DNA from: Sminthopsis crassicaudata
Taxonomy: Eukaryota
NCBI RefSeq assembly: GCF_048593235.1
Contig: NC_133617.1
Coordinates: 394,262,067 to 394,326,066 of the forward strand
Length of the DNA stretch: 64,000 nt
Reading direction: 5' to 3'
Part shown: piece after piece, positions 2,363 to 11,758 of the stretch
Position numbering within the stretch: the first letter of the stretch is position 1
How the letters are laid out: the number at the start of each line of letters is the position of its first letter
Notes under the pieces: generated by a model
Told to the model about the DNA's origin: nothing
Databases searched by the model: none
The model's input: only the letters and a program-made list of their open reading frames with translations
Translations under genes and position numbers: made by a program

Positions 2363-7685
<5,323 letters not shown>

Positions 7686-8500
7686 GGCTCCGGCCCGGCC
7701 CCGGCCTCGGCCCCTACCCCGGCCCGGCCCCGTGATCGGATCACGGCCCCCGGCCCCAGCCGCTGAACTCAGGTCTGGGCCCGCCCTCGCCCCGGGCGCT
7801 GCCGACAGAAAGCGCCAGCGACTCAGCTCGGACCCCCGAGTTCCAGTCCCAAGATGCCCTGAATTCTTCCCTGCGGAGACCAAGCACCGTCACCCAACCG
7901 GAAGTTCCGGCCCGGGAGAGCGAGGGGGGCGGAGCCTGAAGAGAAGGGATGAACCCGTGAAGGACGCCAGAAAATCGAGAAGCTTGGGGGCGGGGAAAAA
8001 GTCGAGCCTGGAGACGTAACAGCGAACGAGCATGAGGGGGCGGGGCTAGCCGGGTTCGACCCTAAGTGAACTGGGTTTACTGAGGACTTCTATTGAGCCC
8101 GCCAGGACAGGAGGGTGGGAAGAGTAGACCCTAGGAGAGGAACATACGTGTTTTTACGCGCGCGCGGTATGGAGGTGTGGCCGAGGCGGGGCGCGGTTGA
8201 AGGGGCGTGTCTGTTCATCAAGTAGTGGGATTGGACCTAAGTAATTAGAAGGGCGGAGAGAAGGTGGACCGTGGAGGAGCTTATCTGTGCTCGCACGTGT
8301 GCGTGCGCGTGCGCGGCCGGAGACGGCGAGCCTTACCTGAGGAAGGGAAAACTCCATTCCTTTTCCCCCTAACCTTTCCATTCCCTTCCCCCTCCCGGCC
8401 CTCGGCGTTTCCTTCCTCTGGGGCCCGGAAGGCGTTTCCCATTTTGAAGACGCCCCCAGTATTCAGAAGGCACCAAAATTGCTAGCTTGGGGCCGGAGCC

Positions 8501-11500
8501 ATGGGCCCGAGCGGGGGTCTTTATGACTGTGACGACCTCCAGTGCTGGACGGCCGTGCTGGGCTGTTACAAGGACGTGGTCAGAGCCAGAGAGGGCAAGA
8601 CCCGCAAGCTTGTCGCTTTGGATGCATGGTGAGCCGAGCTTCCAGCGGAGCCCGGACGGTCCCCGAGTCTCCTGGGGAGCCTGGGGGAGGAGGGGAAGCG
8701 GAGGCGGGAGCGCGTGGTTTAACCGCCCCGGGGCGGGCTCTGGAGATGCAGACACCGGGGAGACAGCTCCTGCCTCCCATATTGTACCCTAATCGGAGGA
8801 AACCACCTGTGCTTTGCGGGTGCCTGGCACGCAGCCAGCGTTTGGTAAATGCCCTTTGATTGATAGGAAAAGGAAATTGTGGTTCCAGGGGTCCCGGAAA
8901 CCCGTGGGTCAGTGCCCAGCCAAACGCGGAGGGACACGGGGGTGGGCGTGGGTGAGCTTGTTTGTGCTCACCAACCAGGAGCAACCAGCTTCGAACCCAC
9001 GGGGAGTTCCAAAGCTGAAGGCTTGAGGGAGGGTGGGGGGAAAGGTGGAAGTAAGAACAGGTGGCAAGAGGCCCTCTCAGTCTTTATCCGGTTTTCTTTT
9101 GGAGGGATCTCCTCTATTCTCCCTGGCAACCTAGACCTTAGGAGACTCAATTTCCAGGGTTCAAAAAGGGGAGGACACATCGTGCTAGTCCCTAAGGGGT
9201 TCGGGACGGAGGAACTCTATCCAGGTGTAGTATTGTCTGGAACCTCGCTCTAAAGCAACTTAAATGTTCCACCCTGAGATCTAAGGGCTAGACTTGGGGA
9301 AAGCTGTGCCAATGGAATAGTGGCCTTCCCTGACCCATCCCCGGTACCACTGCACACACGGATACCATTGCGTTGGTCGGTGGATGCCTATTTCAGGTAT
9401 CAGGAGGAGCTGCCAGTTTCTATAAGAGAGAGAAAGGACAAATACCTCACAAGAGATGAACTGGTGAAGCTGATGGAATGGAAGCTGACGGTAAGCTTTT
9501 ACTTTCTCTGAATAAGGCGATACCTTTAGAGATGGGCACAAATCCATGCTGCACAGAGAAGGCACGGAAGAAACTTGGGTCCTTCCAGAAGGATGACCTG
9601 ACATGGCCTCTGTACTGACTAAACAAGTAACTTTTCTGATCTCCCAAATTGCTAGTTCCTTCCCCCACAATTAAATTATCTTATGTTTATTTGTGTCTTA
9701 TCTCTCTTTTGCTTTCTGCTTCTCTCTATACATACCTATATACATACATATTTATATGTTGTCTCCCTTAATGGAATGGAAGTTCCTTCAGAGCAGCAAC
9801 TATTTCAATTGTCTTTGTATCCACTGCACCTCAAACTTAGCAGGCACTCAGTGCTTGTTGATTGATGTCCACTGGGTGATAAATAGGTTACTCTATCTCT
9901 TAACTGTTTTCTAGTTTCTAAAAACATAAGTGTGTCTCATTTCCTCCCTCCCCCTCCCCCAGTGTCAGAAACAGAATACCCGTGTTAGGAATTAGGGTCC
10001 AATCGCTTCATTTCACAGAGGTAGAAACAAGCCCAGTAAGGGGAAATGACATTTACAACCAAGTTTCAGGTCTTCTAATTCCCACTTTAGTAAAGTCAAA
10101 CCCCAAGACTTGTTCCCTGCCAGGAGCTCTCTTTACTTCAATGACTTCATGTCCTTGTGTTTATAAGACAAGATTTCTTCTTGAAGTTAGGATAGGGCTT
10201 GTATCCTAGAAACTGACGGGAAATGGTTTCCATTGAAGGAGAAGAGATTGGAGTATGTAAATTGGTCTAGAACCTGCAGTCATGAAACTTGGTCATGAAT
10301 ATCAGTTCTACTACTTATTATATATAACATATATATATATAGTATATATATTATGTATATAATTATATCTTATCATATAATCCCTCTGGACTTTAGTGAG
10401 AGACTTGGACTAGATTGTGAGGGGCCTAACAGAGAGAGTCATTAAGAATTCAATTCTGTGTTCTTATCCTCCTCCTCCTGTCCTTCCCTATACACACTTA
10501 GAGGGGCAAATTCAGACCACGACTCCAGAATTTGGTGGCCACTAACACAGAGGAGTTGGTAAAGCAATGCACAGCAGCAGCTTTCTCTCTCCTACCTAAT
10601 GTGGAAGCTGCCATCACAGAACTGAGCCAGCTTAAAGCCGTGGGACCAGCTACTGCCTCTGGTGAGGAAAGAAGAGAAGGGTGAGGGAAGAGAAGGGTGG
10701 GTCCCAGCATCTGGGGGACATTTGTAACCTCTGGGCTAGAACTGAACTCCGGATCTCCTGGACTCTTGGGGAGATCCTAGAAGGGATATGCCATCTCTAA
10801 CATCCATCTCAAACTGAGAAGGCTTCATTCATTCAGTTCAGGGGCTGGAAAAGTATGTGTGACCTAAAATGATGGCTACTGACAGAGCACAAGACACTCG
10901 GCCCTTTTTCTGCTCTCCTTGAGACTTGGGAACATCCCCTCCCCCTACCTGCTGCCTTGGAACACTAGAACAGACCATTTTAATCAGTTCACTTCAGCAT
11001 TTTCCCAACCAATGGCCAAACTTGATCTCATACTACTAAAGATTTCTTCTGCTGCAGCAGATCATCCCCAGCCAATGTGGTAACCTAAAGGTTTAGAGCA
11101 ACTTACTTAAAACAAAGTAACATTCAAGGCCCTATGATGTATGGAAAGTATGGATGGTCCTGGCCTGGAGGATTCCCTGCCCTCCCGTAATCCAGTCATG
11201 CTTTCCTCAGCAATCCTGACAGCAGGTGCCCCAGAGACAACAGCATTCATGGCAGATGAGGCAGTGGCTGCTGTCCCTGGCCTCCCCGTGCTCCAGTATA
11301 CTCTCAAACACTATATCCTGTATTTGGACAAGATCCGGGCCTGTGCTAAGAGACTGAACCAAGGTAAGAGCTAGCAACTGAAAAGATGCATATACTACAG
11401 TAGTCTCAGTCTCTGGTGATCTAACTGCCTCTACTCCCAGAAGGGTTTGGGGAATGATTAGGCCTAAATATAGTGGGTAAGGGAGCTTCAGGCCGCTGGG

Positions 11501-11758
11501 ATGGTAAACTTCTGGCAGGATGCTTAGTTTGAGTGGGCTCAGAGTTGCATATTCATTTTCCCTCCTTGGGCTTTTCTCATAGTTGATGCCTCCGCAGAAT
11601 GGACTCCTCATCAGATAGAAATGTGCCTCTGGACCTGGACTGTGGCCCAGAAACTGTGTCCCACAGTTCTGCCCTCCTTTTTGTGGGAAGCCCCCAAAGC
11701 CATAGACGGTACTGAAGATGTTAGACCGTCCAAGAAACGAAAAGCTAGCATTCACTGA
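8501..11758 (+). CDS. Uncharacterised HhH-GPD-fold putative DNA glycosylase, Amun/zgc:112496-like, 236 aa
   Basis: Exons 8501-8628, 9397-9490, 10502-10661, 11211-11363, 11583-11758 (711 nt). Introns are GT-AG with phases 2,0,1,1, all compatible. Strong Kozak context GCC-ATG-G, stop TGA at 11756-11758. Protein: MGPSGGLYDCDDLQCWTAVLGCYKDVVRAREGKTRKLVALDAWYQEELPVSIRERKDKYLTRDELVKLMEWKLTRGKFRPRLQNLVATNTEELVKQCTAAAFSLLPNVEAAITELSQLKAVGPATASAILTAGAPETTAFMADEAVAAVPGLPVLQYTLKHYILYLDKIRACAKRLNQVDASAEWTPHQIEMCLWTWTVAQKLCPTVLPSFLWEAPKAIDGTEDVRPSKKRKASIH. Motifs LDxWYQEELP, ELVKLMEWKLTRGKFRPRL, LKAVGPATASA, FMADE and WTPHxxExxLW are recognised from memory as the Amun-like family. The gene model is secure; the family name is less so. 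Confidence 0.9.
10318..10378. repeat. Imperfect (TA)n tract in intron 2 of the Amun-like gene
   Basis: Direct reading. Confidence 0.8.

Follow-up and report, generated by a model that had tools for sequence, protein, structure and literature searches.

Does the fat-tailed dunnart, Sminthopsis crassicaudata, encode an overlooked DNA glycosylase that would excise a base and leave the abasic (AP) site uncut? The question is raised by a gene in a 64,000-nucleotide stretch of contig NC_133617.1 (assembly GCF_048593235.1, positions 394,262,067 to 394,326,066 of the forward strand; the window, to which all coordinates below refer). An initial annotation, made from the letters alone, had pointed there to a helix-hairpin-helix (HhH) signature with an alanine at the position of the lyase lysine, followed 19 residues later by an aspartate. 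Judged by its homologues, the locus is the dunnart orthologue of Drosophila Amun (the CG2446/zgc:112496 family). The gene is real, spliced and expressed, and its product is predicted to be a divergent, single-domain member of the HhH-GPD superfamily, with an alanine in place of the lyase lysine and an acidic residue at position 143 in every aligned homologue. We consider that there is about an even chance that the protein is a monofunctional, water-using DNA base-excision enzyme that leaves an AP site.

The Amun-like gene and its transcription

The gene lies on the plus strand at 8501-11758 and consists of five exons, the spliced open reading frame (ORF) of 711 nt encoding 236 residues, and all four introns have GT..AG borders. 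Every residue of the spliced product agrees with the database protein P0152 ("uncharacterized protein LOC141549818 isoform X2", Sminthopsis crassicaudata, NCBI); the gene is annotated by NCBI, though without a name. The residue and codon positions that the initial annotation had assigned to L115, A124 and D143 are exact in this gene model. The exons and the features within them are as follows:

8501..8628, plus strand: exon 1, from M1 to bases 1 and 2 of the W43 codon, with the start ATG in a CpG-rich stretch that is common to this gene and STUB1, arranged head-to-head

9397..9490, plus strand: exon 2, W43-T74, containing the beginning of the near-invariant W71-K72-L73 motif

10502..10661, plus strand: exon 3, from R75 to base 1 of the A128 codon, with the RGKFRPRL motif, HhH helix 1 (108-115), the hairpin L118-K-A-V-G122 and the onset of HhH helix 2 (P123, A124)

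10622..10660, plus strand: first part of the HhH signature, L115-S127, LSQLKAVGPATAS

11211..11363, plus strand: exon 4, from A128 to base 1 of the V179 codon, with the remainder of HhH helix 2, the Gly/Pro loop A132-G-A-P135, FMADE and the Y157-T158 motif

11255..11260, plus strand: acidic pair D143-E144, at the onset of the short helix 143-147, after the HhH/Gly-Pro loop

11583..11758, plus strand: exon 5, V179-H236 and the stop codon, with the conserved W185-T-P-H188...E191..L194-W195 helix followed by a basic tail modelled with low confidence

11732-11743, plus strand: KKRK (229-232) in the basic tail, a likely nuclear localisation signal

The HhH motif is interrupted by intron 3, which falls at the exon 3/4 junction in LSQLKAVGPATAS/AIL and splits the A128 codon as G/CA. 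Codons referred to below are L115 (10622-10624), K119 (10634-10636), A124 (10649-10651), D143 (11255-11257) and E144 (11258-11260). The protein has an overall isoelectric point of 8.4.

Spliced GT..AG joints were found at all four introns in Logan contigs of four runs from four studies, runs that are only guessed to be RNA. The exon 1/2 joint (8627/8 to 9396/7), the joint that passes through the HhH motif (10660/61 to 11210/11) and the exon 4/5 joint (11361-3 to 11581-3, with 152 letters on its shorter side) were each present in 4/4 runs, and the word depth on exons was several-fold above that on introns. Genomic DNA of this locus cannot yield spliced contigs, so the gene is transcribed and spliced as modelled.

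Minor alternative GT..AG joints also occur in the transcript contigs, namely 8628 to 9279 (2/4 runs), 8628 to 9517 (1/4) and 10661 to 10837 (1/4). The acceptor at 9279 lengthens exon 2 and does not keep the main reading frame; there may be a connection with two Tasmanian devil isoforms (P0001 and P0151), whose unusual N-termini continue into the end of intron 1. The run contigs differ from the window at seven single letters; five of these, all of them intronic (9520, 10668, 10727, 10746 and 11095, in introns 2 and 3), read as A>G changes on the transcribed strand and could be alleles or adenosine-to-inosine editing of the pre-mRNA. Contigs break at a TA-rich simple repeat in intron 2 (10300-10360), where read placement skipped 10315-10356 as repeat.

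Family membership and distribution

The dunnart protein is 48% identical over 199 residues (E 4e-62) to a tick "protein amun" (P0084), and homology across the family is full-length. It carries all the motifs of the Amun family, that is WKLxRGKFRPRL, LK(A/G)VGPATAS, FM(A/S)DE, YT and WTPH..E..LW. Members appear in databases as zgc:112496 in fish, as CG2446 in one snake transcriptome entry and as "protein amun" in ticks, and some orthologues bear the UniRef label "HhH-GPD domain-containing protein". Compared with the 236 residues of the dunnart protein, arthropod members have longer tails (351 residues in ticks), the size of the core and all motifs being common to both; no informative domain fusion was found in the longer family members that were examined.

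Exon 3 alone, used as a query in phmmer against the full library, retrieved 259 proteins, and word-index searches with full-length relatives retrieved 463 and 1805. Vertebrate members come from marsupials, monotremes, reptiles, amphibians, bony and cartilaginous fish and numerous placentals, including horse, cattle, deer, hippo, bats, manatee and beaver. Outside the vertebrates it extends to echinoderms, molluscs, crustaceans, sponges, choanoflagellates, ichthyosporeans, fungi and plants. A protein of Pongo abelii (P0098, XP_054391050.1, "translation initiation factor IF-2-like", 435 residues) contains exon-3-like and exon-5-like segments that are 35% identical to the family over 158 residues; the frame is lost after LCGVGP and the FMADE exon is missing. 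It looks like a decayed copy within a mis-predicted gene model, which would fit a loss of this gene from the great apes.

When bacterial and archaeal genomes were scanned, 39 loci emerged, of which 34 are intact genes of about 195 codons. The bacterial proteins are 35-45% identical to the dunnart protein over residues 3-196, with an hhalign probability of 100% (E 1e-53). They come mostly from metagenome-assembled genomes (MAGs) of Gemmatimonadota, Chloroflexota and Rhodothermales, with Longimicrobiaceae and one Steroidobacteraceae MAG also represented (L003-L037). No conserved partner was found in the bacterial gene neighbourhoods, where the adjacent genes differ between loci (ChaN, a PhnB-like protein, MgsA/RarA, GNAT, a phosphoesterase), and the bacterial protein therefore seems to work alone. 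That the genes stand alone speaks for a protein that acts on a universal substrate, and against a regulatory role specific to animals.

The patchy bacterial distribution, together with the high identity between bacterial and animal proteins, raises the question of horizontal transfer. Two further matches, L038:3001-3867 ("Stappiaceae ... chromosome: 21") and L040:3001-3797 ("bacterium isolate ..."), show 53-55% identity and take 800-870 nt for about 180 residues, with an intron-like interruption; they are probably mis-binned eukaryotic contigs.

Predicted fold

Structures were predicted with AlphaFold2 for the dunnart protein, using a 62-sequence alignment, and for one bacterial homologue (L006), using a 55-sequence alignment. 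Both models are of high confidence, with a predicted local distance difference test score of 92.3 and a predicted template modelling (TM) score of 0.86 for the dunnart protein, and 97.1 and 0.92 for the bacterial one. In the dunnart model, which is all-helical, 11 helices extend to residue 203 and are followed by the low-confidence basic tail, so that the architecture looks like an HhH-GPD domain of about 205 residues with a tail resembling a nuclear localisation signal.

With an exhaustive structural aligner, whose own warning is that middling Z values are common among helical proteins, the best match in the PDB was 3n0u_A for both models, at Z 10.4 over 168 residues (root mean square deviation 4.1) for the dunnart protein and at Z 10.8 for L006. 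Ranks 2-21 belong in both cases entirely to the HhH-GPD superfamily; for the dunnart model they span Z 5.1-7.3 and comprise endonuclease III (EndoIII), MutY, Mag1, NTHL1, clostridial Ogg, MagIII, OGG1, AlkA, DUF2419, MUTYH, MutYX, AGOG, MIG and PUGT. The first unrelated fold is Fic, at Z 4.4 for the dunnart model and Z 4.7 for L006. In Foldseek searches of the PDB, the top 21 rows for the dunnart model and the top 50 for L006 are likewise families of this superfamily. One superfamily fills the ranking, about 80% of the core is covered, two models agree and the HhH is correctly placed; membership in the HhH-GPD superfamily, as a divergent, Ogg2-like, single-domain branch, is therefore well supported by the predicted structures.

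Profile searches at the sequence level point in the same direction below their thresholds. Pfam PF21790 ("putative OGG-like") reaches E 0.0023 for the dunnart protein and as low as E 2.3e-5 in bacterial members (24.7 bits, against a cut-off of 27), and DUF6308 also gives sub-threshold matches among family members. Pfam HHH matches the dunnart protein at E 0.015, under the gathering score, and HHH_5 is likewise sub-threshold in the family; single exon pieces yielded no Pfam match beyond a weak one to HHH. HHH is matched by 51/62 family members, with a best E of 4.6e-6, which places the HhH motif above chance at the family level as judged by these profiles. Neither a single piece nor either of the profiles, eukaryotic or bacterial, had a significant match among PDB sequences, where matches stayed at the level of the HhH, and NCBIfam gave only weak matches to mutY or comEA.

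The lyase-lysine position and the iron-sulfur motif

The HhH-GPD motif is marked by an invariant aspartate, and its bifunctional members by a conserved lysine (PMC6728418). In the hhalign alignments, A124 of the dunnart protein falls on K120 of EndoIII and on S120 of MutY, and the bacterial profile gives the same placement. The clusterless MutYX (8uuc) reads GIGPATA where HMMER aligns it to the motif, a core that it shares with the dunnart protein. Across 227 full-length eukaryotic homologues, position 124 is alanine in 226 and threonine in one, and never lysine; it is also alanine in 21/21 aligned bacterial sequences. G122, which closes the hairpin L118-K-A-V-G122, is present in all 227. Because the lysine that marks bifunctional HhH-GPD enzymes is never present at position 124, the canonical lyase step can be excluded for the whole family. 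The initial annotation had read an HhH signature from L115 with its lysine position occupied by Ala124, and both readings hold.

It had also seen no C-terminal four-cysteine iron-sulfur (FeS) motif, which agrees with our results: a C-x-C-x-C-x-C pattern, which near the C-terminus holds the [4Fe-4S] cluster in EndoIII, MutY, MIG and DME, is absent from the dunnart protein, whose cysteines lie at 10, 15, 22, 97, 172, 193 and 204. C193 is the only one that is moderately conserved among the 227 homologues.

The acidic residue at position 143 and its register

Position 143 is aspartate in 223/227 eukaryotic homologues and glutamate in the other four, and it is also acidic in 34/34 aligned bacterial homologues. 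An acidic residue is kept here from bacteria to mammals, and the variability of D143 across orthologues that, according to the initial annotation, would speak against its reading is not seen. E144 is kept in 224/227. The four glutamates all occur in cetartiodactyls (P0058, P0225, P0247 and P0249, that is cattle, deer, hippo and a fourth bovine-like sequence), which read FMSEEA as opposed to FM(A/S)DEA elsewhere, and appear from the alignment to reflect a single, lineage-specific conservative change. In the dunnart model, D143 is the first residue of helix 143-147, after HhH helix 123-133 and the loop 134-142 (DSSP assignment), and so occupies, as modelled, the general place of the catalytic aspartate of the superfamily.

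The initial annotation had gone further, taking the spacing between the two positions as OGG1-like. The distance from A124 to D143 is indeed +19, but this numerical match does not establish structural equivalence, and some eukaryotic members have a loop shorter by one residue, with the aspartate at +18. The bacterial motif, LKGVGPATASA...YPFFDE(L/I)VA, aligns without gaps to residues 108-146 of E. coli MutY, which places the bacterial alanine on S120 and the aspartate of FFDE on the catalytic D138 (+18), at an hhalign probability of 49% (E 1.7e-4). The seven best PDB matches of the bacterial profile are all to the E. coli MutY catalytic domain, in an identical register (E 0.05-0.3). In this region the alignment of eukaryotic and bacterial members is also ungapped, with A/S142 opposite the bacterial aspartate, D143 opposite E139 and E144 opposite leucine or isoleucine. 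Because this alignment puts D143 one residue after the MutY-like aspartate, the argument from the +19 spacing is uncertain by one residue.

The models give indications for both registers. The predicted helix starts at 143 in the dunnart protein and at 139 in the bacterial one, an offset of 4 that is also seen in the flanking helices and supports the ungapped register. The same helix ends at 147 and 142, an offset of 5, and this, together with the local identity DE-VAA in both, favours placing aspartate on aspartate, which requires two compensating indels. Under either register, the alignments have an acidic residue at 143 in all members. The distance from the HhH is not enough on its own to tell which residue is the catalytic aspartate.

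Other conserved features

Apart from the HhH and the acidic pair, conservation is seen in the WKLxRGKFRPRL motif, in which W71, K72, G76, R79, P80 and L82 are invariant or nearly so in eukaryotes; its bacterial form is EWKMARGVWRAPNL. In the model, the RGK-R-P loop lies between helices 62-75 and 80-86, and may be a DNA-contacting or wedge loop. Y157-T158 and, in the last conserved helix, W185-T-P-H188, E191, L194 and W195 are further conserved.

Possible mechanism and alternative explanations

If dunnart Amun is a monofunctional base-excision enzyme, the DNA backbone would be gripped by the HhH hairpin (L118-G122) together with the invariant WKLxRGKFRPRL loop, and the target base would flip into the cleft that separates the two lobes. 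There, the acidic residue at the onset of helix 143-147 (D143, aided by E144) would stabilise or activate the attack of water at C1', releasing the base and leaving the abasic site intact. The β-lyase step would be absent because the Schiff-base lysine is replaced by alanine. The DNA binding, base flipping, catalysis and substrate of this scheme are what we infer from the fold and the conserved residues. An enzyme is favoured because the presumed active site is conserved between stand-alone bacterial genes and animal genes. The co-purification of Drosophila Amun with Rad50, which links it to repair machinery, also speaks for this proposal.

Several observations weigh against this proposal. Pfam PF00730 (HhH-GPD) gives no match at E <=10 with the exon pieces or with ten full-length homologues, nor at E <=1 across the 62-member alignment. 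The hhalign comparisons with E. coli MutY and EndoIII reach a probability of only 7-49% over 20-39 columns, and the Foldseek matches have E of at least 0.06 (dunnart) and 0.12 (L006), with TM scores below 0.5 for both, which marks the fold as divergent. To these is added the uncertainty, by one residue, in the register of D143 relative to the canonical aspartate. The searchable literature contains no report of a biochemical activity for a member of the family, and fly genetics casts Amun as a regulator of the Notch pathway or of transcription.

This last point leads to a different view of the protein, in which the glycosylase fold is non-catalytic and binds abasic sites, lesions or DNA structures, or recruits chromatin and repair factors; it would be a regulator (of Notch/achaete in flies) that cleaves no glycosidic bond, the acidic pair serving only to cap a helix. 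Fly Amun has been described as a nuclear regulator that carries a glycosylase domain and acts in the Notch pathway (preprint), and the protein is known only from genetics, as a Notch-pathway repressor and nuclear regulator. A binding role would also agree with the presence among the structural matches of S. pombe Mag2 (4b21), a glycosylase homologue solved on abasic DNA, and with the ungapped alignment, under which the canonical aspartate position of eukaryotic members may be A/S142; moreover, an aspartate or glutamate at the N-terminus of a helix can be purely structural. However, about 25 residues, including GPATAS and the acidic position, are near-invariant from bacteria to mammals, which is more typical of an active site, and bacteria have no Notch-like context and carry the gene on its own. 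In our view a non-catalytic role is a serious possibility, which we nevertheless consider doubtful.

The same fold could instead act on a substrate other than damaged DNA bases, such as RNA, a hypermodified base, or a nucleoside or nucleotide in free form. The structural matches do include two precedents with other chemistry, the queuine-salvage DUF2419 (7u07 and 7ugk, Z 5.2-6.0) and the phage protein PUGT (8z2m, Z 4.8-5.1), and the sequence matches none of the known glycosylase families in PDB, Pfam or NCBIfam. Nevertheless, the closest fold match is a DNA glycosylase, 3 Z units ahead of the next, the hairpin of DNA-binding type is invariant, the basic KKRK tail fits a nuclear protein, and Drosophila Amun co-purifies with Rad50 (PMC13076223, 2026), so that we regard such a substrate as unlikely.

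Least probable is a bifunctional glycosylase/lyase that uses another amine nucleophile. K72 is invariant, K119 is always lysine or arginine and lies within the HhH hairpin, and K77 is lysine or arginine in 222/227, which makes these three the candidates; yet K119 and K77 are sometimes arginine. We know of no HhH-GPD lyase that uses a lysine outside the helix-2 position.

Comparison with known glycosylases

The closest structural relatives of the dunnart protein are the Ogg2-type 8-oxoguanine glycosylases of Thermotoga (Tm1821, 3n0u, the best match, with 168-169 residues aligned in the two models), M. jannaschii (3knt) and S. solfataricus (3fhg). Like these, the dunnart protein is small (about 200 residues) and all-helical, without an FeS cluster or an extra N-terminal domain. 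Unlike it, with identity of only 14-16%, the Ogg2 proteins are glycosylase/lyases that carry the HhH lysine, which is alanine in the dunnart protein.

MutY is monofunctional, with a general-acid glutamate in its N-terminal lobe, and its S120K variant is reported to have gained lyase activity. It resembles the Amun family in having a small, non-nucleophilic residue at the lysine position (S120), and the bacterial homologues align to it without gaps from the HhH through D138. The dunnart protein differs from MutY in lacking both the FeS cluster and the C-terminal, Nudix-like domain for 8-oxoguanine recognition, and eukaryotic members have A/S142 at the aligned position and the aspartate one residue later, in an alignment that is short and weak (49%). 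With EndoIII and OGG1, the dunnart protein shares the superfamily fold (Z 5.2-7.3) and an HhH that aligns, with A124 on K120 of EndoIII, but it has neither the lyase lysine nor the FeS cysteines that are a feature of EndoIII, and gives no match to PF00730.

Both the gene and its family were already public, as was the description of Amun as a "putative DNA glycosylase", and the step from the lysine-to-alanine replacement to a monofunctional enzyme is a routine reading of the motif, not new in outline. What is added here is a transcript-verified gene model, a quantified conservation of the key residues, an Ogg2-like fold obtained from two models, and a bacterial branch with its aspartate in the MutY register, together with the one-residue caveat that this entails.

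Neighbouring gene

The Amun-like gene is arranged head-to-head with STUB1/CHIP, which lies on the minus strand:

within ORF 7056-7883, minus strand: STUB1 exon 1

about 4750-5052, minus strand: STUB1 tetratricopeptide repeat (TPR) exon

Since the start codons of the two genes are less than 1 kb apart, in a G+C-rich stretch, a bidirectional promoter common to both is likely.

Biological significance

The set of animal DNA glycosylases is usually treated as complete. The Amun family has the fold of a glycosylase and its conservation is deep; the fly member gives developmental phenotypes in the Notch pathway and co-purifies with Rad50. A bolder and rather less probable proposal than base excision as such is that the family constitutes an unrecognised orphan class of monofunctional DNA glycosylase, present in a few soil-bacterial phyla and in most eukaryotes, that would act on a substrate not handled by the known glycosylases, possibly an epigenetic or regulatory mark. 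Practical footholds are provided by the bacterial orthologues of about 195 residues with very-high-confidence models, by a defined residue pair and by the marsupial, fish and frog genes, and the Asp-to-Glu variants of cetartiodactyls offer natural variation at the putative catalytic position. If true, the existence of such an orphan class would explain why a protein with a repair fold scores as a Notch and cell-fate regulator in flies, and how some mammals could lose the gene.

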